Part shown: one piece after another, positions 892 to 51,391 of the stretch
How the letters are laid out: each line of letters opens with the position of its first letter
Position numbering within the stretch: the first letter of the stretch is position 1
NCBI GenBank assembly: GCA_002104905.1
Contig: MCFE01000371.1
Span: forward strand, 1-64,000
Direction of reading: 5' to 3'
DNA: 64,000 nt
Origin: Basidiobolus meristosporus CBS 931.73
Lineage: Eukaryota; Fungi; Basidiobolomycota
Notes under the pieces: generated by a model
The model's database searches: none
What the model was told of the DNA's origin: nothing
What the model saw: only the letters and a program-made list of their open reading frames with translations
Program-made: the position numbers and the translations under genes

Positions 892-1079
892 TTTCCTTTT
901 GCATTTTTCATATATCAAAACACCCCCACTATTCCTCTTACATGAGCAATTTCCAGGCTATCATTTATTTTAGCCGTGCTACCTTTCGTATATGGGTCTC
1001 GTAAGATCCTTCAAAATCACCGGCGTTTTCAGCATCAATATCAGACTAGACTATAGATTTTATGAAGAGTACAGTAAAG

Positions 1080-3367: not shown

Positions 3368-3713
3368 CACCTATACTTTTTATTTAGCTGCTAAAGGTGC
3401 TTTTAAGTGGTGCACTTTACCAAGCTATGGGGTTTCCGGAGAGACAGCCCCGGTTCGCCTTAACCCCCTGGTATGGGCTTTGCTACCTTATACTTGTTTG
3501 CTCATCCCAGAGAAGCGCCCTTTAGTGCTTTTTGGAGAGTTTTATGAGATGGCTGTACTTGGGTAAGGTAAATAGAACACCTCAAATGGGAATTCGACCA
3601 AAGTTTTGTATGCTTTGGTATTTTACCCCTGAGTATTTGTGTAATGTTCTATCTGTTCTCACATTAGGCAATTTTGTTATCGAATATTGAAGGAATCGTA
3701 TGTACATGTACTT

Positions 3714-9430: not shown

Positions 9431-9894
9431 AATTCTTTTGGTCTTTTTGCTGATCGTTGAGCCTAGGCAATCGAATCGCCAACTATTAAATAGTGCGTTG
9501 TACTTTTCTTTTTGCTCCTTGATGATCTTCCGTACCAATAGGGAGTAGTTTGGGATTACATACCTGGTGATTGAGCACATCCGCAACAAAACGTTCGGAT
9601 TAGGGTTAGTTGAAGAACTTTAAATAAATCCCACCGCCTTGGAGTGATCTTTCAAGAATGGGCTCACCAAAAATTTCAGCAAACCGGGCATGGTAATTAG
9701 TGGTGGGGAGTGCGGTCCCTCGACCATAGCGGATGGGTTTGAACCACAATCGTAGCTGGTCGGAATCTGCAGCAATACCACCACGCCAGCACTGCTGTGG
9801 CCAATATGTTACTAGTAGTAACTCGTGTACCACTTATGAGTAGAGTAACCAGCAAGCCGGATAAGATAGCAACTTTAGAGAGTAGTGTATATCA

Positions 9895-9955
9895 GACAAT
9901 ATGCCGAGTGGTTAAGCGTATGACTAGAAATCATATGGCTCTGCCGCAGTCAATG
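9895..9955 (+). pseudogene. Corrupted, truncated tRNA-Ser(AGA) at the inversion junction (likely a sequence-quality artefact)
   Basis: Matches 2911 onward but with shortened homopolymers (ATATGCC, TTAAGCG, ATGGCTCTGCCGC) and no T-arm or 3' acceptor strand. Confidence 0.75.
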
Positions 9956-10249
9956 CTGTAGAACAGATAGAACATTACACAAATACTCAGGGTAAATACC
10001 AAAGCATACAAAACTTTGGTCGAATTCCCATTTGAGGTGTTCTATTTACCTTACCCAAGTACAGCCATCTCATAAAACTCTCCAAAAAGCACTAAAGGGC
10101 GCTTCTCTGGGATGAGCAAACAAGTATAAGGTAGCAAAGCCCATACCAGGGGGTTAAGGCGAACCGGGGCTGTCTCTCCGGAAACCCCATAGCTTGGTAA
10201 AGTGCACCACTTAAAAGCACCTTTAGCAGCTAAATAAAAAGTATAGGTG

Positions 10250-12465: not shown

Positions 12466-12537
12466 TTCCCCATCGGGGAATCGAACCCCGGCCGTCTCGG
12501 TGAAAGCGAGAAATCCTAACCACTGGACCAATGAGGA
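12466..12537 (-). tRNA. tRNA-Glu(TTC), inverted copy, with a Gypsy LTR 11 bp upstream
   Basis: Reverse complement of 1080-1151; 11-nt spacer 12538-12548, then LTR. Confidence 0.94.
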
Positions 12538-12548
12538 CTTTACTGTAC

Positions 12549-12858
12549 TGTTATGAATCGAGGGCAAGCGGAGGAGGACCGGAGGATGTCCAATACGAAT
12601 CAGAGAGGTTATCTGAATAGTTGATGAACCGGTAAAAGGTTGATGCTTTATTGATAGTGTTCAAAGGAGTTTATATAGAGATAGCCTCGGAGGGAGAGCT
12701 TCCGATAACGTAGGGCAAGCTTCCAAAAGGAGGGTTCAAGATGTATTAAATAACGTGTGTATCACTGAGTGCGATTGATCGTCTGTGTGGAATTCCAGGT
12801 GTTCGATCAGTAGTGTTCAAGTGATCGGTAGTGACTAGTTAGGATTTAAATCATAACA
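12549..12858 (-). repeat. 3' LTR of Gypsy copy A (310 bp)
   Basis: TGTTATGA...TCATAACA 8-bp inverted termini; reverse complement of 20912-21221. Confidence 0.96.
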
Positions 12859-12869
12859 TACTCCCACAC

Positions 12870-15800
12870 TTAAAGAGGTTCTTCTCCTGAAGAGTCCTGT
12901 CTATCGGACTTGTAATACCAGTATTTGGTTGGTGGTGTCATTGGGTTTTTTAGCTGTGCTTCCTTTAGTCGGTCTCTATGCACTAGGTCCTCCTTTACTT
13001 TACCTGACATGTCTGCGAGTTGAAATGTATTGAAGGGCATTTCTCTTGTGATAATAAAGGGTCCAACCCAATGTGGTTCTAGTTTTAGCCTACTTTCATT
13101 TCGGACTAATACAAGTTTTCCCAAAGTTAAGGGTTTTGTTACCACTGTTTTGTTGTACTGTTCTTTCATCTTCTCTGCTTGTCGTTTTAAATTCTTGATG
13201 GCATCATGTCTTGCATGTCCTAATTCTTCCAGTTCCCTTGTTCTGAATTCTGCCAAGTCTTTTTGGTTCTTTAAGTCCCAGATGTATGGTGGTAAGGTAT
13301 CACCTGGGATTCTTGGATGTGTACCATACACTAGGTAGAAGGGGGACTTTTGTGTTGCTGAATGGACTCTAATACGACAGGCAAAGAGTGCTTGATGTAC
13401 AAATTCATCCCACTTATGTTTGGCTCCTTTGACATAAGTAGTCAGCATCTTCCCAAAGAGTCCATTGAACCTCTCTGTGACCCCATTTGTTCTAGGGTGG
13501 TATGCTGATGTCTTCAAATGTCTAACCCCCATTATCTGAAGGTATTCTTTCAAGGTTTGTTCCAAAAAGTTTGCTCCTCTGTCAGACAGAATTTCACCTG
13601 GGCATCCAAACTGCATAAAGATTTCCAGGTAAAGGAATTTTGCAACATTTTTTGCAGTAGCTGCTGGCATGGCTTTTGCTATACACCACTTAGTGGTATG
13701 GTCAATTGCAGTTATGATCCACTTGTTCCCTCTTGAAGTTTCAGGCAATATTCCAATGAAGTCAATTCCCCATCTGTAGAATGCTGGAACTGGAGTCAGT
13801 GGTTCTAATGGGGCATGTTCCTTGTTGTATGGTCTAGCCAGCTGGCACTCAGGGCAGGTCTTGAGGGTCTCAGCTATAAATTGTTTGAGTTTAGGCCACC
13901 AGGCTCTCCTTTTAGTTATTTCATAAGTTCCTTGGATGCCCAGATGTCCAAAGGCTTTATGATTCTTGATTATCATGTCACCTCTGTATACAAATGGAAT
14001 ATATGGTACAGGCCCTATTTCTTCCATGTGTCTGTAAAGTACCTCGTCTTCACCATATGAGAAATTCTCTGCTTCTTTCTTAATCTTGACCCTTACTTCC
14101 TGTGATAAATCTTCTGGCATTGTCTGACTTGCCAAGTACTCTGGCATGTATTCTGGCCAGTCCAACTCATGATCTACCATTGATATATGTTGCCTTGAGA
14201 GTGCATCAGCAACTGTATTCTTTGGCCCAGGGAGGTAGTGGATTTTAAAATCAAATTGTTGTAGTTCTTCAATCCATCTAGTTATTCTTCTGGATAATAG
14301 CTTCTGGGTGTGAATGTATCTTAGGGATGCATGATCTGTATATACCACAAAGTGTTTGCCCTCCAAGTAGCATCTCCACACTCTCAGACAATGTAGTATG
14401 GCATAGAGTTCTTTTTCATGGACTGGGTAGTTTTGTTCAGTTACTGATAGCTTTTTGGACTCATAAGCAACCGGGTGTTCTTTTTGAGTCAGTACCCCTC
14501 CAACAGCTAGATCTGAAGCATCAGTGTATACACAGAAAGGTTCTGAGAAATCAGGCAACTGAAGCACAGGGGTTTGGCATAGCTTTTCTTTCAGAGTTAG
14601 GAAAGCTGTCTCACAGTTTGGGGTCCATATATAGTCTTTCTCTTTTTTGGTCAAGTCTGTAAGGGGGGCTGCAATAGTTGCAAAGTCCCTGATGAATCTT
14701 CTGTAATATGATGCAAGTCCCAGGAAGGATCTCATTTCAGTGAGTGACTTTGGGGCTTCCCATTTCTGGATAGCATCTATCTTGGCTGGATCCATGTGTA
14801 GTCCTTTATCTGAGATTATGTGACCAAGGTATTCAACTGATCTGGTGAGGAATTCACACTTAGGAAGTTGTGCATATAGCTTGTGCTTTTTTAGTATAGC
14901 CAGTACTGTCTTCAAGTGCTTCATGTGGTCATCCATGCTGGTACTATAGATCAGAATGTCATCTAAGTAGACCAGGACAAATTTCTCTAAATATGGTTCC
15001 AGGATGCTATTCATGAGTGTCTGAAATGTTGCTGGGGCATTAGTCAGGCCAAAGCTCATCACAACAAACTCATAATGACCATATCTTGTGTTGAATGCTG
15101 TCTTAGAGGTGTCTTCAGGCTTAATTCTGATTTGGTGATATCCAGATGCCAGGTCTATTTTAGAGAATATCTTTGCCTTCCCCAGTTGGTCAAAGAGGGC
15201 ATCAATTCTTGGTAATGGGTAGGAATTTCTGACAGTGATTGCATTTAGGGCCCTGTAGTCCACACAGAACCGTAGCTTCCCATCCTTCTTTGGAGCAAAG
15301 AGTACTGGAGCTCCCCATGGTGATTTACTGGGTTTTATCCAGCCTTTAGCCAGGTAGTCCTTCAATGTTTCCTTCAAAGTCTCCATTTCCTTTGGGGAGA
15401 ACTTATATGGGGCTCTGTTTCTTGGTTTATCATCTGTTACTTCTATGGCATGGTCAATCTCTCTGCTTGGGGGTAGTGCAGGGATTTCCTTGGGAAAAAC
15501 CTCTTGAAACTCTGCTAACAAGGTCTTGAGCCTGTCATTTGTCACTTCTGTGGTCTCTTGGATTTTGGCAAAGGCTATCATGTGCAACAGTTTGGGATTC
15601 TGTCTGATAGAGTGGGCAAACTGTTTCTTTGATATGGTGTGTTCTGGTGCATTGCCTTTGTCCAGGGTTGGTTTGGGTGACAGATGATATTTTGCATCAT
15701 CCTTGTTGATTACAACTTCCTGAGTCTGCCAGTTTATGTCAGGATTGTGCTTTCTTAGCCAAGTTTGTCCCACATTGATTTCAAAGTTGGCTTGGGGTAT

Positions 15801-16874
15801 GATAATTGGGGAAATGGTGTCTTGGAAGTCCCTGATTTGTAAAGTCAAGGGTTCAGTCCTGCTGTTCACTATAATTGATTCCTTGGTGGCACAGAGGATG
15901 TGAATTGGGGGGCAAGGGATTGTTTGTAGCTTCATCTGATCAGCTACATCTTTTGAAATGTAGACATCAGTTGCTCCACTGTCAATGAGTACAGAGACAC
16001 ATTGGTTGTTGTTGAGAATCCCTGGGAGTTTCAGCATCTTTGGGGTAGTATATAAGCTCTGAGTCCTCTGATACTCCTTAACAAGGCTGATTGTGTGCTC
16101 CTCCTCCTTAGTGGAGAGTTGGAATACTCTTTGTAATGGCCTCTTTGGGCATTCATTGACTTTATGACCCTGTTCCTTGCAGTAAAAGCATAGTCCAAGC
16201 TTGAAGCATTCCTCTTTAGAAGGTCTTGGTGTGCTCTGCATAACATCTAGGTCCATAGGCTCCAGTGTGTGGGGGTAGTGTGCACCTTGTTCAGTGATTG
16301 GTTGACTACCAATAGGTATGTGGTTATTGGCTTTGAGGCCTGTAGTAGTTCTTGAGTGACCAATTCTGTGGTTGACAGCCCTTCTGAAGTGTATGGCATC
16401 ATATCTTTCTGCCAGTTCCATAGCCTCTACTAGGGTTTTGGGGTCTTTGTATTCAATTTCCCATCTAGTGTTGGATTTCAGGCCTCTTAGGTATTGCTCA
16501 AGTAGTTCAGTATCAGGCATGTTTTGAATTTCCATACTAAGCAAGTTAAACTGCTCATTGTACTCTTGAACAGACTTGGCTTGAAAGAGTTTGGACAGTT
16601 TTTCTCTTGCCATTCTATCAGCATTGATAGGTGTAAACCTCTTTCTCAATGCTTTAACAAAGTCAGCCCAGGAGGCTATGGGTGGAAAGATGCCCCTATT
16701 CATTCCTTGAATGTGAAGTTTCCACCACATGGTTGCTTCCTTTCTGAAAAGTGAACAGGCATAATGTACTTTGACTTCTTCAGAGTCATCTGAGAAGTAT
16801 AGGTACTGCTCTACTTCAAATATCCAAGTCTCTAGAGTGGCAGTGTGTCTTTTGCCTTCAACCAGAAGAATCAA
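12870..16874 (-). CDS. Single-frame Gag-Pol polyprotein (N-terminus missing)
   Basis: PMDLD, CCHC knuckle [14 protein letters not shown], protease [19 protein letters not shown], RNase H YTDAS, integrase H-H-C-C, WGIDFIG / ILSDRG / [10 protein letters not shown] motif; no chromodomain; TTG start is at the junction and not real. Confidence 0.96.
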
Positions 16875-16939
16875 ACCTCATCCACCTTGAATCCTGGACT
16901 TCTACAACAAATCTGAAACTTCAGAAGAAAAGACACACT

Positions 16940-19900
16940 TCTAGAGACTATATTTGAAGTAGAGCAGTACTATACTTCTCAGATGACTCTGAAGAAGTCA
17001 AAGTACATTATGCCTGTTCACTTTTCAGAAAGGAAGCAACCATGTGGTGGAAACTTCACATTCAAGGAATGAATAGGGGCATCTTTCCACCCATAGCCTC
17101 CTGGGCTGACTTTGTTAAAGCATTGAGAAAGAGGTTTACACCTATCAATGCTGATAGAATGGCAAGAGAAAAACTGTCCAAACTCTTTCAAGCCAAGTCT
17201 GTTCAAGAGTACAATGAGCAGTTTAACTTGCTTAGTATGGAAATTCAAAACATGCCTGATACTGAACTACTTGAGCAATACCTAAGAGGCCTGAAATCCA
17301 ACACTAGATGGGAAATTGAATACAAAGACCCCAAAACCCTAGTAGAGGCTATGGAACTGGCAGAAAGATATGATGCCATACACTTCAGAAGGGCTGTCAA
17401 CCACAGAATTGGTCACTCAAGAACTACTACAGGCCTCAAAGCCAATAACCACATACCTATTGGTAGTCAACCAATCACTGAACAAGGTGCACACTACCCC
17501 CACACACTGGAGCCTATGGACCTAGATGTTATGCAGAGCACACCAAGACCTTCTAAAGAGGAATGCTTCAAGCTTGGACTATGCTTTTACTGCAAGGAAC
17601 AGGGTCATAAAGTCAATGAATGCCCAAAGAGGCCATTACAAAGAGTATTCCAACTCTCCACTAAGGAGGAGGAGCACACAATCAGCCTTGTTAAGGAGTA
17701 TCAGAGGACTCAGAGCTTATATACTACCCCAAAGATGCTGAAACTCCCAGGGATTCTCAACAACAACCAATGTGTCTCTGTACTCATTGACAGTGGAGCA
17801 ACTGATGTCTACATTTCAAAAGATGTAGCTGATCAGATGAAGCTACAAACAATCCCTTGCCCCCCAATTCACATCCTCTGTGCCACCAAGGAATCAATTA
17901 TAGTGAACAGCAGGACTGAACCCTTGACTTTACAAATCAGGGACTTCCAAGACACCATTTCCCCAATTATCATACCCCAAGCCAACTTTGAAATCAATGT
18001 GGGACAAACTTGGCTAAGAAAGCACAATCCTGACATAAACTGGCAGACTCAGGAAGTTGTAATCAACAAGGATGATGCAAAATATCATCTGTCACCCAAA
18101 CCAACCCTGGACAAAGGCAATGCACCAGAACACACCATATCAAAGAAACAGTTTGCCCACTCTATCAGACAGAATCCCAAACTGTTGCACATGATAGCCT
18201 TTGCCAAAATCCAAGAGACCACAGAAGTGACAAATGACAGGCTCAAGACCTTGTTAGCAGAGTTTCAAGAGGTTTTTCCCAAGGAAATCCCTGCACTACC
18301 CCAAGCAGAGAGATTGACCATGCCATAGAAGTAACAGATGATAAACCAAGAAACAGAGCCCCATATAAGTTCTCCCCAAAGGAAATGGAGACTTTGAAGG
18401 AAACATTGAAGGACTACCTGGCTAAAGGCTGGATAAAACCCAGTAAATCACCATGGGGAGCTCCAGTACTCTTTGCTCCAAAGAAGGATGGGAAGCTACG
18501 GTTCTGTGTGGACTACAGGGCCCTAAATGCAATCACTGTCAGAAATTCCTACCCATTACCAAGAATTGATGCCCTCTTTGACCAACTGGGGAAGGCAAAG
18601 ATATTCTCTAAAATAGACCTGGCATCTGGATATCACCAAATCAGAATTAAGCCTGAAGACACCTCTAAGACAGCATTCAACACAAGATATGGTCATTATG
18701 AGTTTGTTGTGATGAGCTTTGGCCTGACTAATGCCCCAGCAACATTTCAGACACTCATGAATAGCATCCTGGAACCATATTTAGAGAAATTTGTCCTGGT
18801 CTACTTAGATGACATTCTGATCTATAGTACCAGCATGGATGACCACATGAAGCACTTGAAGACAGTACTGGCTATACTAAAAAAGCACAAGCTATATGCA
18901 CAACTTCCTAAGTGTGAATTCCTCACCAGATCAGTTGAATACCTTGGTCACATAATCTCAGATAAAGGACTACACATGGATCCAGCCAAGATAGATGCTA
19001 TCCAGAAATGGGAAGCCCAAAGTCACTCACTGAAATGAGATCCTTCCTGGGACTTGCATCATATTACAGAAGATTCATCAGGGACTTTGCAACTATTGCA
19101 GCCCCCCTTACAGACTTGACCAAAAAAGAGAAAGACTATATATGGACCCCAAACTGTGAGACAGCTTTCCTAACTCTGAAAGAAAAGCTATGCCAAACCC
19201 CTGTGCTTCAGTTGCCTGATTTCTCAGAACCTTTCTGTGTATACACTGATGCTTCAGATCTAGCTGTTGGAGGGGTACTGACTCAAAAAGAACACCCGGT
19301 TGCTTATGAGTCCAAAAAGCTATCAGTAACTGAACAAAACTACCCAGTCCATGAAAAAGAACTCTATGCCATACTACATTGTCTGAGAGTGTGGAGATGC
19401 TACTTGGAGGGCAAACACTTTGTGGTATATACAGATCATGCATCCCTAAGATACATTCACACCCAGAAGCTATTATCCAGAAGAATAACTAGATGGATTG
19501 AAGAACTACAACAATTTGATTTTAAAATCCACTACCTCCCTGGGCCAAAGAATACAGTTGCTGATGCACTCTCAAGGCAACATATATCAATGGTAGATCA
19601 TGAGTTGGACTGGCCAGAATACATGCCAGAGTACTTGGCAAGTCAGACAATGCCAGAAGATTTATCACAGGAAGTAAGGGTCAAGATTAAGAAAGAAGCA
19701 GAGAATTTCTCATATGGTGAAGACGAGGTACTTTACAGACACATGGAAGAAATAGGGCCTGTACCATATATTCCATTTGTATACAGAGGTGACATGATAA
19801 TCAAGAATCATAAAGCCTTTGGACATCTGGGCATCCAAGGAACTTATGAAATAACTAAAAGGAGAGCCTGGTGGCCTAAACTCAAACAATTTATAGCTGA

Positions 19901-20900
19901 GACCCTCAAGACCTGCCCTGAGTGCCAGCTGGCTAGACCATACAACAAGGAACATGCCCCATTAGAACCACTGACTCCAGTTCCAGCATTCTACAGATGG
20001 GGAATTGACTTCATTGGAATATTGCCTGAAACTTCAAGAGGGAACAAGTGGATCATAACTGCAATTGACCATACCACTAAGTGGTGTATAGCAAAAGCCA
20101 TGCCAGCAGCTACTGCAAAAAATGTTGCAAAATTCCTTTACCTGGAAATCTTTATGCAGTTTGGATGCCCAGGTGAAATTCTGTCCGACAGAGGAGCAAA
20201 CTTTTTGGAACAAACCTTGAAAGAATACCTTCAGATAATGGGGGTTAGACATTTGAAGACATCAGCATACCACCCTAGAACAAATGGGGTCACAGAGAGG
20301 TTCAATGGACTCTTTGGGAAGATGCTGACTACTTATGTCAAAGGAGCCAAACATAAGTGGGATGAATTTGTACATCAAGCACTCTTTGCCTGTCGTATTA
20401 GAGTCCATTCAGCAACACAAAAGTCCCCCTTCTACCTAGTGTATGGTACACATCCAAGAATCCCAGGTGATACCTTACCACCATACATCTGGGACTTAAA
20501 GAACCAAAAAGACTTGGCAGAATTCAGAACAAGGGAACTGGAAGAATTAGGACATGCAAGACATGATGCCATCAAGAATTTAAAACGACAAGCAGAGAAG
20601 ATGAAAGAACAGTACAACAAAACAGTGGTAACAAAACCCTTAACTTTGGGAAAACTTGTATTAGTCCGAAATGAAAGTAGGCTAAAACTAGAACCACATT
20701 GGGTTGGACCCTTTATTATCACAAGAGAAATGCCCTTCAATACATTTCAACTCGCAGACATGTCAGGTAAAGTAAAGGAGGACCTAGTGCATAGAGACCG
20801 ACTAAAGGAAGCACAGCTAAAAAACCCAATGACACCACCAACCAAATACTGGTATTACAAGTCCGATAGACAGGACTCTTCAGGAGAAGAACCTCTTTAA
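16940..20900 (+). pseudogene. Gag-Pol of copy B split by two single-base deletions (ORFs 17042-18328, 18385-19038, 19008-20900)
   Basis: The three ORF pieces match the copy A protein; both breaks are at C homopolymers one base shorter than in copy A, so probably sequencing errors. Confidence 0.85.
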
Positions 20901-20911
20901 GTGTGGGAGTA

Positions 20912-21221
20912 TGTTATGATTTAAATCCTAACTAGTCACTACCGATCACTTGAACACTACTGATCGAACACCTGGAATTCCACACAGACGATCAATCGCA
21001 CTCAGTGATACACACGTTATTTAATACATCTTGAACCCTCCTTTTGGAAGCTTGCCCTACGTTATCGGAAGCTCTCCCTCCGAGGCTATCTCTATATAAA
21101 CTCCTTTGAACACTATCAATAAAGCATCAACCTTTTACCGGTTCATCAACTATTCAGATAACCTCTCTGATTCGTATTGGACATCCTCCGGTCCTCCTCC
21201 GCTTGCCCTCGATTCATAACA
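20912..21221 (+). repeat. 3' LTR of Gypsy copy B (310 bp)
   Basis: Preceded by PPT-like AAGTGTGGGAGTA (20899-20911); TGTTATGA...TCATAACA; TATATAAA 21093-21100; AATAAA 21118-21123. Confidence 0.96.
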
Positions 21222-21227
21222 CTCTCG

Positions 21228-21345
21228 AGCATCGGCCATACATACCAGAAAATACCGGATCCCGTCCGATCTCCGAAGTCAAACTGGTAATGGCCTAGTC
21301 AGTACTACGGTGGGGGACCACGTGGGAATACTAGGTGCTGATGTT
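21228..21345 (+). rRNA. rrn5: 5S rRNA
   Basis: AGCATCGGCCATAC...CCCGTCCGATC...AGTACTACGGTGGGGGACCACGTGGGAATACTAGGTGCTGATGT; helix I closes; TTTT terminator; collinear with known fungal 5S. Confidence 0.96.
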
Positions 21346-21539
21346 TTCTTCCGAATTGCTCCACTACACAATACTCTTTTGCTTCTGTTATGTGTGCGTG
21401 TGTCTGTTCTTCCTTTGCTACTGCTGTCTTTGGTATAAAAGAGTTTGCTTTCCAGATACAATGCTGCTCTCTATTCCCTAGTCATTATTGCTGAAGGGCA
21501 ATTTTAGATAGTATATATAAGAAAGGGTTGTCGTATAAT

Positions 21540-22127: not shown

Positions 22128-22212
22128 CCGAACATAGCTCAGTTGGTAGAGCGGAAGACTGTAGTGTTATATAGCAATCTTTAGGTCCCTGGTTCAAATC
22201 CGGGTGTTCGGA
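22128..22212 (+). tRNA. tRNA-Tyr(GTA) with a 12-nt intron (22165-22176)
   Basis: CCGAACA...TGTTCGGA; GAAGA-CTGTAG-[TGTTATATAGCA]-A-TCTTT; canonical 37/38 intron position. Confidence 0.94.
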
Positions 22213-22576: not shown

Positions 22577-22887
22577 TTCAACTGACAAACGTTGGTTTCT
22601 CAAAATACTTGTATCAGTGTTCATCTTGGTTGATAGAAGCATTTGCATAAAACTAGCTTAGCAAGGATTCTCTGGATGGTGCACCTGCCTCCCAAAGTCA
22701 GCCATATCAGTATGTTCTATGCCGGGTGGATTCCCTAACCCGACGGTTTCCATAATTCTTTGAAGCATCACGGAAATCATCTTTTAAGCGTTTGATAACC
22801 ACTGTAGAATGGCAAACTCCGACCATATAGGAAACCAACACTTGACAAAAACGACATATTCCATTAAAACTTTGTACACTCAATAAG

Positions 22888-22960
22888 GCCCGGCTAGCTC
22901 AATCGGTAGAGCGTGAGACTCTTAATCTCAAGGTTGTGGGTTCGACCCCCACGTTGGGTG
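22888..22960 (+). tRNA. tRNA-Lys(CTT)
   Basis: GCCCGGC...GTTGGGTG; TGAGA-CTCTTAA-TCTCA. Confidence 0.96.
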
Positions 22961-23102
22961 ATGTATATTTTTTATTCTTTGTTTTTCACTTTCCTGGAAT
23001 TGAGCAATAATTTTTGTGTTTTGAACGGTTGTCTGTATATGATATTTAAGCCGGATAGTGATATGGAAGAATGAAACAATGAATCCCAATAGAGTAATTA
23101 TT

Positions 23103-23174
23103 GGACGTATAGCTCAGTGGTAGAGCAATTGACTGCAGATCAATAGGTCGGTGGTTCAAATCCGCCTGCGTCCT
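23103..23174 (+). tRNA. tRNA-Cys(GCA)
   Basis: GGACGTA...TGCGTCCT; ATTGA-CTGCAGA-TCAAT. Confidence 0.95.
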
Positions 23175-23294
23175 CATCTTTTTTGCTAATTGAAGCGTTC
23201 ATTAAAATACAATTTCGCCTAGCCACCAATTACATCTACTCACATAAATATAGCATTCAAAAGATTGATGAAATTCATTTAGAATAATCCAAAA

Positions 23295-23367
23295 TGGAGG
23301 ACCTGGGTATCGATCCCAGTGCCTCTCGCATGCTAAGCGAGCGCTCTACCATCTGAGCTAGACCCCC
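23295..23367 (-). tRNA. tRNA-Ala(AGC)
   Basis: Minus GGGGGTC...GTCCTCCA with G3-U70; CTCGC-TTAGCAT-GCGAG; T-loop ATCGATA. Confidence 0.94.
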
Positions 23368-23757
23368 ATATATATACACCTCGGTGGAAAACCACTTATC
23401 TTTTTTAATTCTTCAATAGATGTACTCGCATGGCAAAGAAAATACTGGCTAGCATTGAATTGAGGACCCTGTTAACAATGGTAATGTGTATGTCTCTTAT
23501 TATCAACTTTGTGCGATCAAGGGGGCATTCATTGATGTATGACTGATGGCTATTTTGGAGCATTTTTGTTATCCACACTACAGATGCTTTTGTTTCTTTC
23601 GGTTTGTTAATAGAAATCTCTCTGTGGCTACGCTATTAAGAGCTTCTGCCGTTTTCCCATATATAGCGCAATCTAGAAGTACACTAAATGTGAAAAGTAA
23701 TCAAGCCTAACAGATCAGATTTCCGTATTTTCTAAGACGGTTGTTTGCACTGGTACT

Positions 23758-23839: not shown

Positions 23840-25660
23840 TGTTTTCCTGTCAAAATGGATTGTTAGTAAGAATGGGGTACTCTGAGCTGCAGCAGCAATT
23901 AATGTTGTGGATTCCCCTTGGTAATTCTTGATTGACAAGTAATGTAAAAATGCAATTTTTCCATCACAACAGAGCCCATCCTCCAAAGTTAAGCATCTGT
24001 TGTGGGCACATATCTTGAGTTTTCAGCTGTAACTTTTGTTCCAAGTCTGCCAAAATAATACTACAGTTTGTCCAAGTGTCTATAACAACCAGATATTGCT
24101 TCTTGTTGATACTTATAAGTATTTGTGCTACCTGAATATCCTCTTGTGGTTGTTCCTCAGCCTTTTCTTGTATATTATTCATATGTTGCTCCATGTGGTT
24201 TAACTCTTGCTTCAACATAGGCTACTTTAAAAGACTTCAAATTGGAACAGGGATTTCCTGATTCCTTATTTGGTTTGCAACTTGGGTGACATCCATTAGT
24301 GTTGTTATGCCAGATGGTTTTATTGTTCCCCCTCCAGTTTCTATTATCATGCATTCCATTTTTGGGGATTCATCCTTTGTATCCATTGACTTTTTTCTAA
24401 CATATATATAGAATCTGTCATGTCTTCTACTATGTTGACTTTGGAATGGCTCCTATATTTGCCTTCCTCTTGCAAGGTATTTCCTTCTCTTTGTGTATTT
24501 GCTACTACAGTTGGTACTAACTTGAAATAAGGACAATTCCTCAAGATATGTCTGGGTTCTCCACAACCAAAGCATCTTTGTTCCCTTCTTGGAGGGTTGT
24601 GGTTTGAACTGGGGATAGAACTAGAATTTGTCTTCTGACTGGCTAACAAATTAAGTTCCATTCAATCAAATTTAGCTGCCAGTTTATCCAGTTGACTATC
24701 CCATGATGTTGTTGGTGGAGTTAATAATAGTGCATGTGTTTTCTCATTGATATTCTCCCTTGTAGGGCCTCCTAGACATTGTTCCTCCTCCTCAGCAAAA
24801 GCAATTGCTTCACCCAGAGTTGTGGGTCTACATTTTCTGACCTCCATCTGGATCTCAGAGTGAAGAACATTGAGAAACTTTGATCTTATCTTCCTCCAGT
24901 GAGTATCCCAACCTTGCAAATAATCTTAATACTTATGTGGCAATTTCTGCTACTGATTCATCTTTCTGTCATAAATTCATCAGGTTTGACACCATGCATC
25001 CATTTGTGCCATTGTGACATATTTTTCCTTGAATCTTTGCTTAATGGTTTCCCAATCTGTCAAAAGCCCTTCACTTTCTTCTTACCTAGTAGCTGCTAGT
25101 TCCTTCATGTAAGCACCTGCAATTGTTGGAAGATCTGCTAGATCCCATCAATTTGCCTTTTGACTTACTTCACATTCCTGTAGCCAAGCAATAGGATATT
25201 TGGTCTGATATCCCAAGAAATTGCTAATTGTGACCAGTCTTTGTTCCCATTGTAGCATGGACATCTTCTGTTCTTTTTGTAAGAGATAGATTCCTTTTGT
25301 TTAATACTACCCCCTGCTGTGAGCACTAATTCTGTTATGTACTTAAAGAGTAATGTCCTTTAGAGAGTACAAAAAGGGATAATATGTATGTTATCTTGTA
25401 GATTTGACAGGGTAGTGTAAGAATATCTCTTTAAAAGGTTAGGGTGTTGACCTTGTAGAAATATATTTAAGCTAGTTTTTGCTCCCACTATGCTTTTCTG
25501 CCTATAACCAAAAACTCCCTTTTTACTTAGTTGCTTGTTTGATATTTATACCTTACTGTGAGTCTGGTGATTTGTCTTTGATTTGCTTTTCCCTGACTAC
25601 TAAGTTGTCTTTGTATGTGTTGATGTCACTTAACATCAAGTGACTCTTTACTCTGTAACA
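23840..25660 (-). mobile_element. Degenerate Ty3/Gypsy-like relic (older family): 5' LTR, gag, protease fragment
   Basis: Broken frames with KCRPTTLGEAI, CCHC CFGCGEPRHILRNC and protease-like YLVVIDT; LTR at 25333-25660; almost no CpG. Confidence 0.8.
25333..25660 (-). repeat. 5' LTR of the older Gypsy relic (328 bp)
   Basis: TGTTA...TAACA termini; homologous to 30127 onward; TATAAAT on minus strand; PBS-like tract on the gag side. Confidence 0.75.
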
Positions 25661-25670
25661 ACTCAATAAG

Positions 25671-25743
25671 GCCTGGCTAGCTCAATTGGTAGAGCATGAG
25701 ACTCTTAATCTTAAGGTTGTGGGTTTGACCCCCACATTGGGTG
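25671..25743 (+). pseudogene. tRNA-Lys(CTT) pseudogene
   Basis: Five CpGs changed to TpG/CpA, including T-loop TTCGA to TTTGA (B-box damage). Confidence 0.9.
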
Positions 25744-25886
25744 ATGTATATTTTTTATTCTTTGTTTTTAACTTTCCTGGAATTGAGCAATAATATTTGT
25801 GTTTTGAATGGTTGTCTGTATATGATATTTAAGCCAGATAGTGATATGGAAGAATGAAACAACAAATCCCAATAGAGTAATTATTG

Positions 25887-25924
25887 GACATATAGCTCAG
25901 TGGGTCAAATCCACCTGCATCCTC
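25887..25924 (+). pseudogene. tRNA-Cys(GCA) pseudogene with internal deletion
   Basis: GGACATATAGCTCAGTGG joined to GTCAAATCCACCTGCATCCT; anticodon arm missing. Confidence 0.85.
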
Positions 25925-26043
25925 ATTTTTTTTGCTAATTGAAGCATTCATTAAAATACAATTTTGCCTAGCCACTAATTGCATCTACTCACATAAATAT
26001 AGCATTCAAAAGATTGATGAAACTCATTTAGAATAATCCAAAA

Positions 26044-26116
26044 TGGAGGGCCGGAGTATTGATCCCAGTGCCTCTTGCATGCTAAGCAAGCACTCTACCA
26101 TCTGAGCTGGACACCC
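26044..26116 (-). pseudogene. tRNA-Ala(AGC) pseudogene
   Basis: Copy of 23295-23367 with four CpG transitions and stem mismatches. Confidence 0.88.
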
Positions 26117-26126
26117 ATATATATAC

Positions 26127-26361
26127 TGTTGAAGTATGTACTACCAAGGGTGTTAACCAGAGATTGGTGTTCAAAGGTTGAGGCTGGAAGGAAAGACTGC
26201 TTTATTTTCTAACATGTTTTGCTAATTTATACTTTGGTGAACTACATTTGCTATATGCATGTCTTAGCCATTTTGCCTAATTTTGGTAATACTCAATGGA
26301 TGGTTCAGGGGTAGGTCTCCAGTTGTGATGGTTTGAAGATGCTGATGACCTTACCACAACA
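26127..26361. mobile_element. Solo LTR (235 bp), unclassified family
   Basis: Absent from the intact copy; TGTTG...CAACA termini; flanks ATAC/ATGC resemble a 4-bp TSD with one mismatch. Confidence 0.72.
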
Positions 26362-27423
26362 ATGCACCTTGGTTGAAAACCACTTATCTTTTTTAATTCT
26401 TCAAATTTTGTTGCCCATGTCATTTACTAAATTTGGCAACTTTGTAAGTATTACACTGAAATCTGTAAAGTTGAGGTGATAGAAGTTTGTCAATTGCAGT
26501 TGGTGTGCACATATACAGAGGCTAATAGACTTGTTTGATTGTACCATGCCATGGTGTGTAGCATAGAGTTTGGTTGTTTAGAACAATTGGGTGTAATATT
26601 GTAGCTACCAGTAGGCAGGATTGCTCTTGGACCATTTTCATTTTATGGGACAATATTGCACACTATGGTACAATCTGACATTATTGATTTTTTGTACCTT
26701 TGATTTGTATTTCAAGGATCATGGCTTAAATGCTTTTTGAAATAACTATAAGATGTTTGTAACTTTCTTGTAATAAAATGCTTTTTTAAATTTTTTCAAA
26801 ATTAGAAACTATTGATTTAAAAGCATTTGGCACTTACTTCAAAATCTTTAGAATCTTGTGTGCAGCAATAATAATCTGATAGTACAGAATTTTCTTAGAT
26901 GACCACTTTTATTTTTTAGAGCAAATATATATCTAGATGATAATATCTTAATTTTGAAAGAAATTTCCAACACCTACTTTGATGTTGGTTAAGACTTTTT
27001 TATGTAGCCATTTTTGGGTTAAGCCAGACTTTTCCAGCTGCTAAATATTTAACCTAGTTTGAATGAAGCTTTTTCCCAATAATAAACTTTTGATTTCAAC
27101 AAAAGCTATTTCCAAGATGTAAAATTCTCTTAAGCTCTTTTAGTTTTCACCAAAAATACTTTTAAGATGTGAGAAGTCTCTAGACAACAAGCTGTGTCAC
27201 ATGTATAGTGAATATTTTCAGTATGATAAGAGTTTTTTAAATCTAACCAAAAATATTTCCAAGATGCTAAAAGTTTTGAGATGACAAGCTTGGGCTAAGA
27301 TCAAGCAAGTATTTAAAGTATTGACCAATGCAGATATATCATACAAAAAAGTATTTGGATAAAAAAATGATTGACATAAAGTTTGTAAAAAAGAATTTTT
27401 GGTCCAACAACTAACCTTTGATT

Positions 27424-27772
27424 TGTTGTAAAAATTCGTATTTCCACCTAAATAGTCACCTAACTTAGTCACTTAGATCATCACCTTCAAATCCTAGAGA
27501 ATACTGACCAAATTCCTTGTCGGGATTTACTTAGAATATTTTCACCAAAATACCAGGTACCCAGAGCATCAAAATTCTCAAAGTTGGCCAAACAGCCCCA
27601 AACTTTGCACACATGTTCTTGGGACCTTCCTTAACCTATTCTACGTGTTTGTAATGCCAAGATCAGGTAAAAGTATAAATACTACTTTTACATTCAATAA
27701 ATCATTAAGTGAAAACCACATAATCTACTTGTTCTCCAAATCACTTCCAATATCTCCAAGACTCTTACAACA
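27424..27772 (+). mobile_element. Copia-family solo LTR
   Basis: 349 bp, TGTTGTAA...TTACAACA, TSD TGATT, homologous to 56512-56860. Confidence 0.93.
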
Positions 27773-28899
27773 TGATTCACCACCCTTACATATATAAGCC
27801 ATTACATTCTTGTTTGTACTATAGGTCTTGCTTTTTTCATGCTACAATTATCTTCTCACAACTTCACCCAATTAGTTAACTTATCCTTTTTAGAAACCCC
27901 ACACTGAAAACACCAATGATACAAGAAGCATATGACTGGGCAGAACTACTACCTGGACACTTGGAATCAAGAATTTTTTCTCCACAGACTATACTAGAAA
28001 TCCAAAGAAAAGTGACAGAAAACAGCAGATAACCCACTGAAGACCATGAGGTAGTCTACAAGGTAGTAGAGTAATATATATATCCCACAGACAAGTTTAT
28101 TTATATAGTTGTTATAGTTCATTTGTCAGTATTTATCTTATCAGTATTATCTCATTCTGCTTTGCCCATATTATCAGTATTATCCCTATATGATATTCAC
28201 CATGATGTGTTGTTGGCATTAGTTATCCCAACTGTTATTCAGCTTTGTGATCTGCAGATGTATTTACATTAGGCAGGTATCCATATCAGTACCCACAACA
28301 TATGATCTATATCTGTATAACCATCTCTAGCATTGAGAACTATATATGGTTTATCTATGCCATAGGTGATTCAAACTACTGATCCCTGATTATTTGGATG
28401 TATTGTGCCTTTTAGTACCTTCTAGAACCTTCTCAAAGTATTTTGAGCTCAAAGTGATGTCATCATAAGTATAAATGATGCCTGAAATCTTCTATAACCT
28501 TGTCATTAGTAATTACTTGGCCATCTGGAAATGTATTTAAGGGAAGTCAATATCCCATCAATAAATCATCTCTCTATCAGTGACAGTGGCCCCTCATTGA
28601 TTAGTAGCTAATCACTGCACCAATCTTCAGCAATTACACCTTGCACTATGCATAAAGGAGCTTCTCACAGTAGTGCACAAGACACACAGAGGTCTTTGGA
28701 GACACTTGGAGCACCTAGGATGCCAGAGAAGCTGGTGCTTTTACCAGAGTGACATATTGACAGAGACACTGCAGTTTAGACCCAGATATTATTGCCCCCA
28801 TCAGACACCTCACACCCTGTGAGTTGTGTACCTTCTCCCACATGTACCTCTACACCACCACAACAAGAAAGCTAGTGCAGGAAATGTATCATATGTACC

Positions 28900-29503
28900 A
28901 TTTGTCATGAGAGCAGACTTGATAGCCAAGTACCAACATGGATTTGGACATCTGGGGTCAAGGGACCACACAAATAGTATCTAGAAATGTTTAGTGACCC
29001 AGAATGTCAGAAGACATAAAGCACCTTGCCCATAGTGGCCAAGAGTGCCAGCTCACCCAAAATGCTCAGCTGAACAACTTGCAAATGTACCCTATACCAC
29101 CTGACAAACCATTTCACAGATGGCCACTTGACTTCATTAGGATTTTGCCCAAAACAAGTTCTAGAAAGTAGTATGTCCTGGTGAGGATTGTTTGTTGTAC
29201 TAAATGGCAGTTTCAAGAGCACTCAAAGAAGCAAGCCAAAACAAAATAGCCTGGCTCATATATGAGGAAATAGTGATGCAGTATGGAGGCCCAGCCAAGA
29301 TTTTGACAGACAGAGGTGCCAATTTCATTGCAAAATATTCTGGGACACCACTAGGAGTTACTGAACATCACTACCTCCAGACTTTGGCCTACCATCTACA
29401 GACTAATGGAGTCATAGAGATACTCAATGGACTCTTTGGAAGAATGCCAACTAAACACTGTAAAGGAGCTATACATAAATGGGATCTACTACTGCAGAAT
29501 TAG
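28900..29503 (+). pseudogene. Gypsy integrase relic
   Basis: Broken frames with GHLG, PFHRWPLDFI, EIVMQYGGPAKILTDRGANF, QTNGVIEILN. Confidence 0.82.
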
Positions 29504-29559
29504 TTGACATAAAGAAAAAACTGTAAATATATTTACATGATGCATTTTCTTACTCACAT

Positions 29560-30405
29560 GTCCCTTGCCTGACCTCCTATATATGGCTCCATCTCCTTGG
29601 TAAAAGCTTTTGCTTCACACAGAGCTGTGGGTTTACATTTTCTGGCCTCCAATTAGGCCCTATGTAGAATAGTATCAAGAACTCTTAGATCCTATCTTTA
29701 TCCAAAGAGCTTGAAATCTTGAGAGCAGTATCAATACTTCTGTGATAGTTTCTGCTATTGATTCATCATTGTCTAATAAATCCCTCACATTTGCCACCAT
29801 GCATCAGTTCTTGCCATTGTAGCATATATTTCTTTCAATCATTGCTAAAAGGCTCCCATTGTGTTAAAGGTTTTTTGTTTTCTTTGTACCAAGAAGCTGT
29901 CAGATCCTTTATATAAGCACTTGATATCACTGAATGATCCCATCAATTTGCCTTTTGACTGACTTCACATTCCCATAGCCAAGCAATAAGATCTGTGGTC
30001 TGGTAATCCAAGAAATCACTGATTGTGACCAATCTTTGTTCCTGTTATAGTATGATAATCACCTGTTTGTCTTTTAAGAGATGGAATCTTTTTGCTTAGT
30101 ATTACCCCTGCTTTGAGTACCAGTTCTGTTTCATGCTTACAGAGCATTATCCTTTAGGGAATATGGAAGTAAATAGTGGGAATGTGTCATGTAGATTTGA
30201 CAGGGTTATGTAAGAATATCTCTTAAAAGACCAGGATGGTGAATTGTAGATTTCTTTCAAGGTAGTAGTCTCTTGTACTGTTCTTCCTACTTTGAACCAA
30301 ACATGTTGTTCATTTGATTGTTTGATTGGTATTTATACCTTATTTTATGTCTAATGATTTGTCTCTATTAATTGAGCCAGCTGGAATTCTCTAAGCTGTG
30401 TAGAC
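29560..30405 (-). mobile_element. Second relic of the older Gypsy family (gag 5' part plus LTR)
   Basis: Aligns to about 24790-25640; PBS-like TGGTACTCAAAGCAGGGG (30105-30122, minus) 4 nt from the LTR edge at 30127; outer limits approximate. Confidence 0.75.
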
Positions 30406-30848
30406 AATGATAGTGAGTGAGTCAAATCAATATTTATGTGTGACCACAAAAAATGCATCAATTAGCAATGTTGGTCTCTGCTTTGATATATTCAAAACAA
30501 ATGCAAGAAGGATATTGGGCAGTAGCTGATAAGCTTTGTGAGGATCTAGGTGATCAGGGTAATGCAAGTTTTTAGATGCAAATACCATGTTAACAGCATT
30601 ATCCAAGAGTAACTGAGATGTCTTGAAGCTAGATTCACTTTGTGTAATACTCACTACTTTGCTGTGTTTCAGTTGAGCATGATAATGGGAGCTTGCAGGT
30701 GACTTGCTGTACAAAAAAAAGCTTGTGGTTTGGCTCATAGCTTTATTGAGTTGAGATGATAGTTTTTAATGTTGGTATGTACTTTGTAAAAACAGATGGG
30801 AATGCCAAAAAGTTTATTCATTTTAGCAACTCCAAGAAGTTTGGTAAC

Positions 30849-31180
30849 TGTTGTAAAAGTTTGTAATTCCACCTAAATATTCACCTGACTTAGTCACTTA
30901 GATCATTACCTTCAAATCTCAGAGAATACTGACCAAAATCCTTGTTGGGATTTACTTAGAATAGTTACCCAGAACATGAAAATTAGATAAGTTGTTCAAA
31001 CAGCCCCAAACTTTGCACACATGTTCTTGGGACCTTCCTAAACCTATTCTACATGTTTGTTATGCCAGGACCATGTAAAAGTATAAATACTACTTTTACA
31101 TTCAATAAGTCATTAAGTGAAAACCACATAATCTACTTGTTCTCCCAATCACTTCCAATATCTCCAAGACTCTTACAACA
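30849..31180 (+). mobile_element. Copia-family solo LTR
   Basis: 332 bp with a short internal deletion; TSD GTAAC on both sides. Confidence 0.92.
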
Positions 31181-31377
31181 GTAACTACCAATATTTTCAC
31201 TATTCATAGTAATTATGTTGCAAGGAATTTACCAATTCTAAGTAAACATTGATGGCACAGCTAAGAGAATGCCATATCTCCTCAATTAAAAGTAAATTTA
31301 TTTGTATAGAATAGCAAATCATACATACTTCGAGCCTATGTTCAAAAGGAAGGATGTAAGCATTGGAGGAAGGGGGT

Positions 31378-34300
31378 TTATGTACGAGGGAGGCTGCTGG
31401 AGGCTTCAGGATCATCCTCGGCTGAACGAGGGCTGTTATTACCTGAAGACATCGCCATGAGTTTTTCCGCCTCTGTAATAGCTGAGCGGTTAGGTTATGT
31501 CGCGTTCTGTTAGTGTGGAGATGCATTCAAAACTTACTTGAGATTAGGTGCTTGCCATATGTATACTTCTTGAGAGACTGTAGATGAGGCTTGATCTTGT
31601 TGATAAGGATCTCTCTCTGGTCGCCATCCACCACATCAAGCATTTTTTGTACAACGTAGTTGGCATACTGATCCTTCATCATGATGATCAGCGCAGAGTT
31701 GCCGTCGGGCTTTGTCTGGATGACTTCGTCAATGAGGGTCTGTCGGTCCCGCTTGCTCCCATGCGCGATACACTTCTCCACCACGTTACTTGCGAACTTG
31801 TGCTTGCTCATTTGCAGCACTTGGCCACGCACCTTGCTAACGACCAGCGACCGGTCGGCTGGCTTTCCTCTTTCAAGCACGTGCTGGATGACGTAATTGC
31901 CGTATTGGTCTTGCACCAGGTTCTGCGTGTACCGGTGGAGCTCGTCCAGAAGGGGCTTGGTTTGCTCGTCGGTGCAGTGCTCGAACATCCGCTGGATCAC
32001 TCGGCATCCGTACGGGTGAGTGGCGAGGCTGTAGACTTGCCCGTGGAACGCGTTGATGATGAACTGAATGTGCTCGGCCGGCACTCGCTCGATGGCCTTC
32101 TGGATCACATGGTTCCCATTTTGATCTTTCACGCATTTCAACACATTGCCGTCCAGCTCTTTTACTAGGATCGCTTGTTGCTCGGTCAGGACGTGTTCAA
32201 GGGCCTTCTGGACGACGCGGCAGCCATACATCTGGAGAGAGAGCGACAGCACATGGGTTTCCATCTGCTTGGCAAGAATACTCTTCTGGACTTGGTTGCC
32301 ATGCTCAAAGAATTTCTGGATCACATAGTTGCCAAACACATCGGTCATCAGCTGCAGAGCGTTCGGGAGGATCTCCTCAAACACAAGTTGTTTCTCCTCA
32401 CTGTTGGCAGTCTCAAGCTTCTGCTGGATGAAACGGGAGCCGTGTTGGTCGCCGCTGAACTCCACCATGCTTCCGACAATATCCCGCAGTTCGTATTTCT
32501 TGTTTTTGTTATTGCGGAATTCCTCCAGAAGGGGGCTTCTCATGCCGTGGTTCGAGTCCACAACCCCGAGGGATGGTAGGCTCAAGTCAGGAGTCATGGC
32601 CCGTCTCCCTTGGCCTGCGGTAACGTTGAATGGTGCGGCGTTGCCCATGACGTCCGGGCCATGCTGCTGTCGAAGGAATTGCTCGCGCAGCAACATCTGC
32701 TGTTGATTGATCTGCTGCTGCTGCAAAAGAAGTTGATTGCGCAGCTTTCGTTCGTTCAGCGAGTACGTGGAGTGCGATCTGTGCAAGGTTTGTGCGCCAT
32801 ACCCAGCCGAGTTGATGTAGCTGTTGCTATTGATCCCGTTTCCACCCGTTCCGTAAAGCTGGTTTCGCTTCATAGCGCCAAGCTCAGAGGCCAGAATTTG
32901 TTCGGCACGGCTAGCTGAGAATCCTTGCTGTTGGAGTTGTTGGAGAGCTTGTCTGTACTCCAAAGGAGAGAAGCCTAAGAGCTCCGCACGGCTGTAGAGA
33001 TCGCTCCCCGACCCATGCTCCTCTCTATCCCAAGAATACATGTCCGGATATTCGTTGAGATAGGAGTTGTACGTCTGCGATTGCAACTTTGCTTGCTGCA
33101 AGAGTCGCGTCTGCTGGACCGCCTCGTAGTCACTGTCATTAAGATTCATCCCGCGCATGTCCATAAGCAGGTTGGCGTTGATGTCTCCGAGCTCCCCGTT
33201 AGGACCCATCTGCTGACCGCGTTGGAAATGTTGAGCGGGAGGGGTGGAGTTGGCTCGTTGAGGCATAGGAACTCGAGCACCACGCATGGGAGACACCCCG
33301 TTATGAGGTGAGTAACGCTCCTCCTCCAGACCGTCGATGGCTGCATTGACCACGGACCTGAGGCGGACACGATCATAATCATTGTCAGAGTGCAGCCCAG
33401 AATTGAGATCGCTGTCATCGGCACCGCCACGACCACCATCGAATTGTCGCTGCTGGGCAGCAATGCCTGGGGATGGCGTACGCGGAAAGTCCTACGCCCG
33501 TCTTGATAAGTATTGACATGGAAAAGCAATCCGAAAGGGCCACTTACGTCTTGAATCAAATCAACTAGGTTGCGGTGTCTAGAGCCAGCATCTGCATTGT
33601 TTCCGCCGCCATAGATTTGCTTGACCTCACTGTTGCCCCATGGGTCGTTCTTCGATTCGCTCAGCAACATACCTCTACCGTGCTCGGGCTCCAAGCTCTG
33701 CAAAGCATACATCAGTAAATGCCCAAGTTGCAACTAACCGTGGCGTAACAAACCTGGTCAAGAGGATGGGTGTTGGGAAACTCGTCGCTGCCTGTGGAGA
33801 GCAAATTAGGGGGAAATCTGACTGGAGAATGCCGGTCGTTCATACCGAAACCCTTGAATCGATCCATCGACTTGTCTTGATGCGAAGATAAGCCGTTCGG
33901 GTTCTTCCCAAGCGTATCGATCCCTGCACCTGCCCACATTTGCCAGGGCTGGTTATTGGCCCCGTAGCCGGACGATACCTTTACGTCAGCTCGAGGCTGA
34001 CCATAATACTGGCCAGGCTGTTCCGCGTCTAAACGGACCGCGTACTCGCCCTCGGCATTCTGCTGCTCCAGAGATTAGGGATGTTTTGTCAACGGTCGTC
34101 AAGTAAAAGAGATACTCACACTAAACCCGCCTAGACGCTCTATAAGATGAGTGGGGGGAGCACTGTTAGAGCGGTTGATGTCGCTAGGTTGGCCGGTGAA
34201 TGGGCCATATTCAAGGTCGAACTTGCCACGGAGGAGCGCGGCGAGCTGTTGAGCAATAGATTAATACGCAAGGCGATCGACTGGTTGGGCACTCAGATGT

Positions 34301-43700: not shown

Positions 43701-44427
43701 CGAATCCTTGTACGAGGACATCCGCTACGAGAAGCCGCAGCGGTTGATCTCGCTGGGCGACACGAGCCCCGCCCCTTCCGTGGAGCTGCAGTCCGATCGG
43801 CCTGAGGACATGGTTCATCTAGCGAAGCATGTGGATCAAAGGGCCGAAGAGATTCTCATCAGCATACCCCAGGTGGTGCAACCCATACAAATCAAAACGA
43901 AGAAAGACCATCATCTAAGCAGCGGCTCCAACAAGAACCTGGATAGCGATGTGCCCCTCTCCCTGAGCTGCTCCCCAAAGTCCCCAGGTCGCCTCTCCCA
44001 GGCCACAGCCAACTCGACGCTGCAGTCCGAATACAGCACTGACTACACAAGATCCTCCCGAACCTTCTCCTACTACTCGCATCAACTGGATGCCGCTACG
44101 AACGACATGGAGTCCCAACCGAGGTCACGCCCCGAAAGCGATCGTAGCTCCAGCAGAGACCACTCCCATCTTCTCAACGGGACCACCGCTGGCTCGAAGG
44201 GTGCACTGGTGCAACGGCTGATGCGGGAGGAGATCTATTATTTCCTGAAGGAAGCCAACCTCAACACGGTGACGAGGAGAGACGTGAAAGAGCGGCTTTT
44301 TGAGCATTTCGGGGACGCAGTGACCATTTACAACGACTTCATACACGATTGCATCGAGGAGTTCACCTTGGAGAGACTGGCGTTGCTGCCGTCAGCCACC
44401 TCGCCGCAATCGCCCTCCACTCCTTGA
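40734..44427 (+). CDS. Division-2 (class V/VII-like) chitin synthase homolog without myosin motor; QRRRW motif degenerate
   Basis: Introns 41161-41232 and 41734-41782 join the ORFs; b5-like domains, GKRDS, VLDADT, LGED, TM helices, C-terminal DEK_C-like EEIYYFLKEANLNTVTRRDVKERL. Confidence 0.9.
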
Positions 44428-51030: not shown

Positions 51031-51130
51031 AACTCCATTTAATCACCGCAAACTCCATTTAATCACAAATAAACTCCATTTAATCACCGGCCAACTCCAT
51101 TTAATCACAAATAAACTCTATTCAATCACC
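51031..51130. repeat. Five copies of AACTCCATTTAATCAC at about 20-bp period
   Basis: Direct reading; short variable linkers; last copy degenerate. Confidence 0.9.
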
Positions 51131-51391
51131 AACAGACTCCATCGCAGACAAGCTAACCTATCCTATGATCACGACTGATCCCACTTCTGCGCCGACATCA
51201 CCATCCCCATCGTTTCACACAATCACCCATCATGGGATCGGGTAATATCACCTGAAAATCCGTGGCCCTTTCCTTTGTACCAGTCTTTTCCAGTCCGGGT
51301 GCAACCACTTTTTGTTTCTCCTTCAACCTCTTTTGCGTGCACGAGTCTCCTTCTTCCCAGTTACTTGCTCGAGATTACCTAACCGGGCGTC

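Follow-up and report, generated by a model that had tools for sequence, protein, structure and literature searches.

Among the Ty3/gypsy elements that settle beside Pol III genes, Ty3 of Saccharomyces cerevisiae and Tj1 of Schizosaccharomyces japonicus are the main points of comparison for the element reported here. In the Ty3 integrase (IN), a loop of the C-terminal domain (CTD) touches TBP, and a vestigial chromodomain that follows the CTD (IN residues 446-511) holds Brf1 and works as a ruler (PMC8632968). For Tj1, the insertion sites lie at -5 to -11 relative to the mature 5' ends of tRNAs and at -3 for 5S genes, every insertion is oriented like its target gene, and no recognisable similarity to Ty3 IN was found by its authors (PMC4600332). 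Both elements produce a 5-bp target-site duplication. The table of Pol III-targeting Ty3/gypsy elements in a 2018 review holds only elements of ascomycete yeasts and dictyostelid amoebae (PMC5911963), and our literature search returned no paper reporting the habit in early-diverging fungi.

Here we describe a gypsy element in Basidiobolus meristosporus CBS 931.73, identified in a 64-kb window (the whole stretch of DNA that was analysed). One copy, designated A, ends upstream of a tRNA-Glu(TTC) gene and a second, designated B, ends upstream of a 5S rRNA gene; the habit known from Ty3 and Tj1 is thus seen here in an early-diverging fungus. The interpretation that we favour, at a probability of about 0.8, is that a recently active Ty3/gypsy element has integrated a few bases upstream of Pol III gene starts, and that the head-to-head layout in which its two copies appear is an artefact. 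The coordinates of the main features are collected in Table 1.

Of the described systems, Tj1 is the closest behavioural match. The element described here is found at -11 of tRNA-Glu and at -6 of the 5S gene, in both cases forward, as Tj1 would be; Tj1, however, has a stop codon separating gag and pol, whereas the present element has one open frame, and the host of Tj1 is an ascomycete, whereas the host here is a zoopagomycete. Ty3, also gypsy-type, likewise inserts within a few base pairs of Pol III starts, including those of 5S genes, and shares with the present element the IN arrangement NTD-CCD-CTD, but the two integrases are only about 23-24% identical. In addition, the chromodomain remnant of Ty3 has no counterpart in the present protein, which ends ~29 disordered residues past the CTD, and Ty3 relies on a +1 frameshift and integrates in either orientation, in contrast to the single frame and two forward copies found here. 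A third system, DGLT-A of Dictyostelium discoideum, is found 13-33 bp upstream of its targets in either orientation and is known from no intact copies; here the insertions lie closer to their targets and within a narrower range, and the element has kept an intact frame.

Table 1. Coordinates of the element copies, their targets and other features of the 64-kb window
Feature	Position	Strand	Evidence or remarks
Empty site, unit 1	1058-1079	+	Break between 1068 and 1069
Empty site breaks, other units	4556/4557 (unit 2), 8044/8045 (unit 3)	+	
Array inversion joint	9946-9951		Forward part ends at unit position 2964, reverse part starts at unit position 3665
tRNA-Glu(TTC), filled-site target	12466-12537	-	ARAGORN; Rfam, 61.1 bits; alignment; identical to the copies in empty units
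11-nt spacer, LTR end to mature tRNA 5' end	12538-12548	-	GTACAGTAAAG on the minus strand
3' LTR of copy A	12549-12858	-	310 bp, TG..CA ends
Presumed polypurine tract	12859-12869	-	Purine-rich GTGTGGGAGTA in sense, between stop codon and LTR
Copy A gag-PR-RT-RNaseH-IN frame	12870-16874	-	1334 codons uninterrupted; without gag N-terminus; enters palindrome centre
Head-to-head joint centre of copies A and B, inside gag	16840-16935		Symmetric arms, indel noise rising towards the centre
Copy B internal part	16936-20911	+	Alignment to copy A
3' LTR of copy B	20912-21221	+	Identical to copy A LTR
6-nt spacer CTCTCG, LTR end to 5S gene	21222-21227	+	
5S rRNA gene, second Pol III target	21228-21346	+	Rfam RF00001, 108.6 bits
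Paralogous tRNA-Ala with empty site for the solo LTR	23296-23367		Empty site 23368-23385
Older-family gag, CCHC knuckle	23960-25264	-	
5' LTR, older decayed gypsy family	25333-25660	-	Outer end 10 nt from tRNA-Lys(CTT), divergent orientation
tRNA-Lys(CTT) beside older-family LTR	25671-25743		
Decayed tRNA-Ala	26044-26116	-	Below Rfam threshold, 25.6 bits
Solo LTR, third family	26127-26361		235 bp; 10 nt from decayed tRNA-Ala
Host ORF	41836-44424		100% identical to K493DRAFT_339889

At the start of the window, a 3488-bp unit carrying ten tRNA genes is repeated in tandem, and the units are mutually 100% identical (3488/3488). The array follows the plus strand to ~9945 and is then flipped, so that 2.6 kb of the unit is read on the minus strand, down to the tRNA-Glu gene beside which copy A ends. 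In the plus-strand units, where the Glu genes start at 1080, 4568 and 8056, the sequence reads ...TATGAAGA and then GTACAGTAAAG, uninterrupted. Alignment of 200 nt around each of the four Glu genes (three empty and one filled) demonstrated full identity of filled and empty units beginning at the spacer, and no relationship between them on its upstream side; the inverted array begins at unit offset 844, which corresponds to window position 1069. A single A could belong either to the LTR end or to the empty site, which leaves the break alone ambiguous by 1 nt; since the second copy has a different flank (CTCTCG), the LTR end can be set at ...AACA and the junction at -11. All of the array bases beyond the junction (2549/2549) are identical to those of the other units, and both the tRNA gene and its unit are therefore undamaged, giving an intact target gene with a demonstrable empty site.

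The sequence-only reading of this locus had put the LTR 11 nt upstream of tRNA-Glu(TTC), and its coordinates proved to be right by ARAGORN, Rfam and alignment. It had also fixed the integration point exactly at unit position 1068/1069, and this is indeed the base at which the three 100%-identical empty units diverge from the filled one. From the sequence of the junction, the target-site duplication of copy A would have its proximal repeat in the initial 4-5 nt of the spacer and may be either GTAC or GTACA; the sequence-only reading had inferred a 5-bp duplication, GTACA.

Over its 310 bp the LTR carries, in sense orientation, terminal inverted repeats of 8 nt (TGTTATGA...TCATAACA), TATATAAA at ~position 182 and AATAAA at ~position 207. 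The stop codon of the copy A frame lies 11 nt from the LTR, and Pfam places along this frame, in the Ty3/gypsy order gag-PR-RT-RNaseH-IN, Ty3_capsid/Retrotrans_gag (residues 6-164), RVP_2 (286-393), RVT_1 (528-687), RT_RNaseH (775-874), Integrase_H2C2 (964-1015) and rve (1033-1127). In a search against solved structures Ty3 came out on top (7q5b, E 1.8e-141). The original assignment of the repeat as a Ty3/gypsy 3' LTR is thus in agreement with a single upstream ORF holding all five domains, for which Ty3 is the best solved-structure match.

A word search with the polyprotein in a large protein collection returned a closest relative just 34% identical, and the element itself was absent from that collection. 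A metagenome scan yielded 27 loci of 26-50% identity, none of them by a tRNA gene, and relatives of 32-38% identity among them likewise had no tRNA neighbours; as most of the contigs barely exceed the length of the element, this says little about its targets. Within the 64-kb window, there are two 3' LTRs of this young family, one per copy, and no LTR copies besides those of the two arms, solo LTRs included; neither a 5' LTR nor a PBS nor a gag N-terminus nor a target-site duplication of either copy was found there.

The second copy is flanked by another kind of Pol III gene. The sequence from 12549 to 16839 recurs, reverse-complemented, at 16936-21221, and at its far end the LTR stops just short of the 5S gene, so that copies A and B are each oriented like their own target gene. 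Over 4.29 kb the two differ by a single substitution, CpG in copy B (20186) and CpA in copy A (13584). Relative to copy A, the frame of copy B is also disrupted by two 1-nt deletions, both in G runs, and further indels distinguish the copies near the palindrome centre. Such a substitution is what cytosine-methylation decay, and not long-read error, is expected to produce, and because of this lone CpG/CpA difference we regard the arms as two real, very young copies at different Pol III genes. The difference also fits methylation-driven CpG decay on very young repeats.

With LTR ends at -11 of tRNA-Glu and at -6 of the 5S gene, both insertions in the window (n=2 for the young family) fall within ~1-12 nt upstream of a Pol III gene, and they involve more than one Pol III gene class, tRNA and 5S, as called by ARAGORN and Rfam. 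The earlier suggestion of Pol III-start targeting as in Ty3, made from the tRNA-Glu site, is strengthened by this second copy 6 nt from a 5S gene and by the 5-11 nt range of Tj1.

The arrangement of the two copies, which the sequence-only reading did not mention, requires separate consideration. Copies A and B are fused head-to-head at ~16886 to give a 4.3-kb palindrome, in which both arms stop at the same element position while their flanks are different loci. Bursts of indels are seen at the two inversion joints of the window, at 9806-9993 and 16800-16975. Those at the array joint lie within ~150 nt of it and are mostly bases lost in G runs, the array being perfect elsewhere, and those between the arms are concentrated in the last ~60 nt before the palindrome centre. 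No match to a SMRTbell-like pattern was found at the palindrome centre, in an ungapped search with an approximate pattern over a noisy stretch.

Two explanations can be offered for this layout. On the evidence of the joint sequences, we consider it quite likely that both the head-to-head fusion and the array inversion are chimeric or fold-back misassemblies of long reads. Alternatively, the palindromes may be real: inverted copies would have been fused head-to-head by genomic rearrangement, a fold-back or an inverted-repeat-mediated deletion would have removed both 5' ends, and the array inversion would be true. The structure does stand in the public assembly, and the single substitution between the arms shows them to be two loci. 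Against this, rearranging two independent copies should not break both at the same base, and indel noise confined to the joints of otherwise clean repeats is what the consensus of one or a few chimeric reads gives; both observations favour misassembly. Inverted triplication by origin-dependent amplification was rejected as a source of the forward-inverted-forward layout, since the forward array is without the element and the array joint shows an asymmetry of 701 nt. Real palindromes are therefore, in our judgement, unlikely; if they were real, the targeting conclusion would stand and copy A would be a dead, truncated element.

The misassembly reading has several consequences. The lack of a 5' half is then probably due to the assembly and not to truncation of the element, and in the real genome copies A and B are probably two separate full-length insertions. 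Misassembly also makes the adjacency of filled and empty units insecure, and here the sequence-only reading, which had spoken of three neighbouring empty units, holds in part: the break is exact in the plus-strand units, but the filled minus-strand unit lies in opposite orientation beyond the suspicious joint at 9946-9951, and that the units are neighbours is insecure. The filled unit and the three empty units nevertheless belong to one array, or the filled unit lies in a perfect sister array. Two probable misjoins are thereby flagged in the public B. meristosporus CBS 931.73 contig of 85,185 bp.

With two joints that look chimeric less than 7 kb away, it could be asked whether the LTR-Glu junction is itself an assembly chimera of an element copy and the array. 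However, the break falls exactly at the terminal CA of the LTR, at a position typical for the habit, and both sides are clean, as the perfect identity of the array bases demonstrates, whereas chimeric joints fall at random positions and, in this contig, are noisy. We consider a chimeric origin of the junction highly improbable.

Other LTR ends in the window are also found next to tRNA genes. One belongs to an older, decayed gypsy family and faces tRNA-Lys(CTT); its assignment as the 3' LTR of a plus-strand element was ruled out, as the gag ORFs with the CCHC knuckle are on the minus strand. Another is the solo LTR of a third family beside a decayed tRNA-Ala gene, for which a paralogous tRNA-Ala supplies the empty site. 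From this comparison the solo LTR has a 4-bp duplication, GTAT/GCAT (GTAT with one later change), and it is the only LTR of the window with a scorable target-site duplication.

Together with the ends of copies A and B, four LTR ends lie within a 6-nt band, from -6 to -11. The window holds 46 Pol III genes, and the positions 1-12 nt upstream of a Pol III gene make up 0.86% of it, so that the chance of LTR ends falling in these 12-nt upstream intervals is ~7e-5 for two and ~6e-9 for four. It could be proposed that there is no targeting at all, insertion being near-random and only those copies surviving that lie beside Pol III genes, where they are harmless; tRNA upstream regions are known safe havens, and with its 46 Pol III genes the window is tRNA-rich. 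But with hundreds of spacer bases on offer in every array unit, selection cannot account for the crowding of four independent LTR ends between -6 and -11, and copies with 1 difference in 4.29 kb are too young for purging to have shaped their distribution. We give survival without targeting very little credence.

Targeted integration thus remains the preferred explanation, for which the following mechanism can be proposed. Copy A would have entered at the tRNA-Glu gene of a homogeneous tandem array, 11 nt from the mature 5' end, leaving the tRNA intact, and copy B would have entered 6 nt upstream of a 5S rRNA gene. In both cases, the integrase would be tethered to the TFIIIB (TBP/Brf1/Bdp1) pre-initiation complex upstream of the start site, and this tethering would leave only a few base pairs open to strand transfer, in the manner of Ty3 and Tj1. 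No fixed TATA element or motif was found upstream of the window's Pol III genes. A pre-tRNA start 10-12 nt upstream of the mature end, on which the sequence-only reading relied, holds for budding yeast and is an assumption for Basidiobolus. In S. pombe, pre-tRNA leaders are 1-6 nt long (PMC4600332).

The surroundings of the older LTRs contain further repeats. A segmental duplication, 22878-23400 versus 25661-26400, comprises tRNA-Lys(CTT), tRNA-Cys and tRNA-Ala; its second copy is 91-95% identical to the first, with many CpG-to-TpG/CpA changes, and its tRNA-Cys lacks an internal segment near 25903. From 26400 to 31500 there follows an AT-rich nest of decayed elements, in which no tRNA gene was detected. 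This nest includes an integrase fragment (28880-29494, plus strand), a further copy of gag and LTR from the older family (29561-30450) and a repeat pair, 27424-27772 and 30849-31180, of 91-92% identity. Outside the nest, a weak integrase-like similarity (58650-59650, minus strand; 21-24% identity to gypsy polyproteins) lies inside the ORFs at 56872-59673, and a 21/42-nt tandem repeat (5.4/2.7 copies) occupies 51031-51142 in the GC-rich, gene-bearing part. At 22128-22212, ARAGORN reports a tRNA with a four-base anticodon (gtag), which scores 59.9 bits with Rfam and is probably an intron-bearing tRNA-Tyr(GTA).

If the habit is that of Ty3, the protein that would carry it out is built differently at its C-terminus. 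Alignment of the integrase to Ty3 stops at the CTD (Ty3 polyprotein residue 1444), with about 28-29 residues remaining. An AlphaFold model of the integrase (29-sequence alignment, pLDDT 78.6) comprises an NTD, a catalytic core, a long helix and an SH3-like barrel, the beta-barrel spanning residues 305-356, followed by a disordered tail (362-385) with pLDDT <50. A Foldseek search with this model returned ordinary integrases, among them those of PFV (1e-24) and Ty3 (1e-19). By both alignment and model, the vestigial chromodomain that follows the CTD in Ty3 is absent. Without a chromodomain of the Ty3 type, the surface that makes the contact must differ, at least in part; as judged from the predicted structure, the element would work like Ty3 without the Ty3-specific domain.

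These findings bear on how Pol III-start targeting is achieved and how widely it is distributed. The site is a very clean natural example of the habit, combining an exact empty-site comparison in a homogeneous array with a second hit at a 5S gene. Since its integrase is without the domain that explains the precision of Ty3, the family offers a comparative test of how TFIIIB is read by integrases. We tentatively raise a broader possibility, to which we give less than even odds: that a zoopagomycete gypsy lineage without an integrase chromodomain acquired or retained Pol III-start targeting; this lineage would read the TFIIIB-bound promoter by another surface, insert in the forward orientation only and still be active in homogeneous tandem tRNA arrays. 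If this is true, the element would represent a third, independent molecular solution to the problem of "safe landing" in fungi, and this would suggest that the habit extends far beyond the Ascomycota or predates them.
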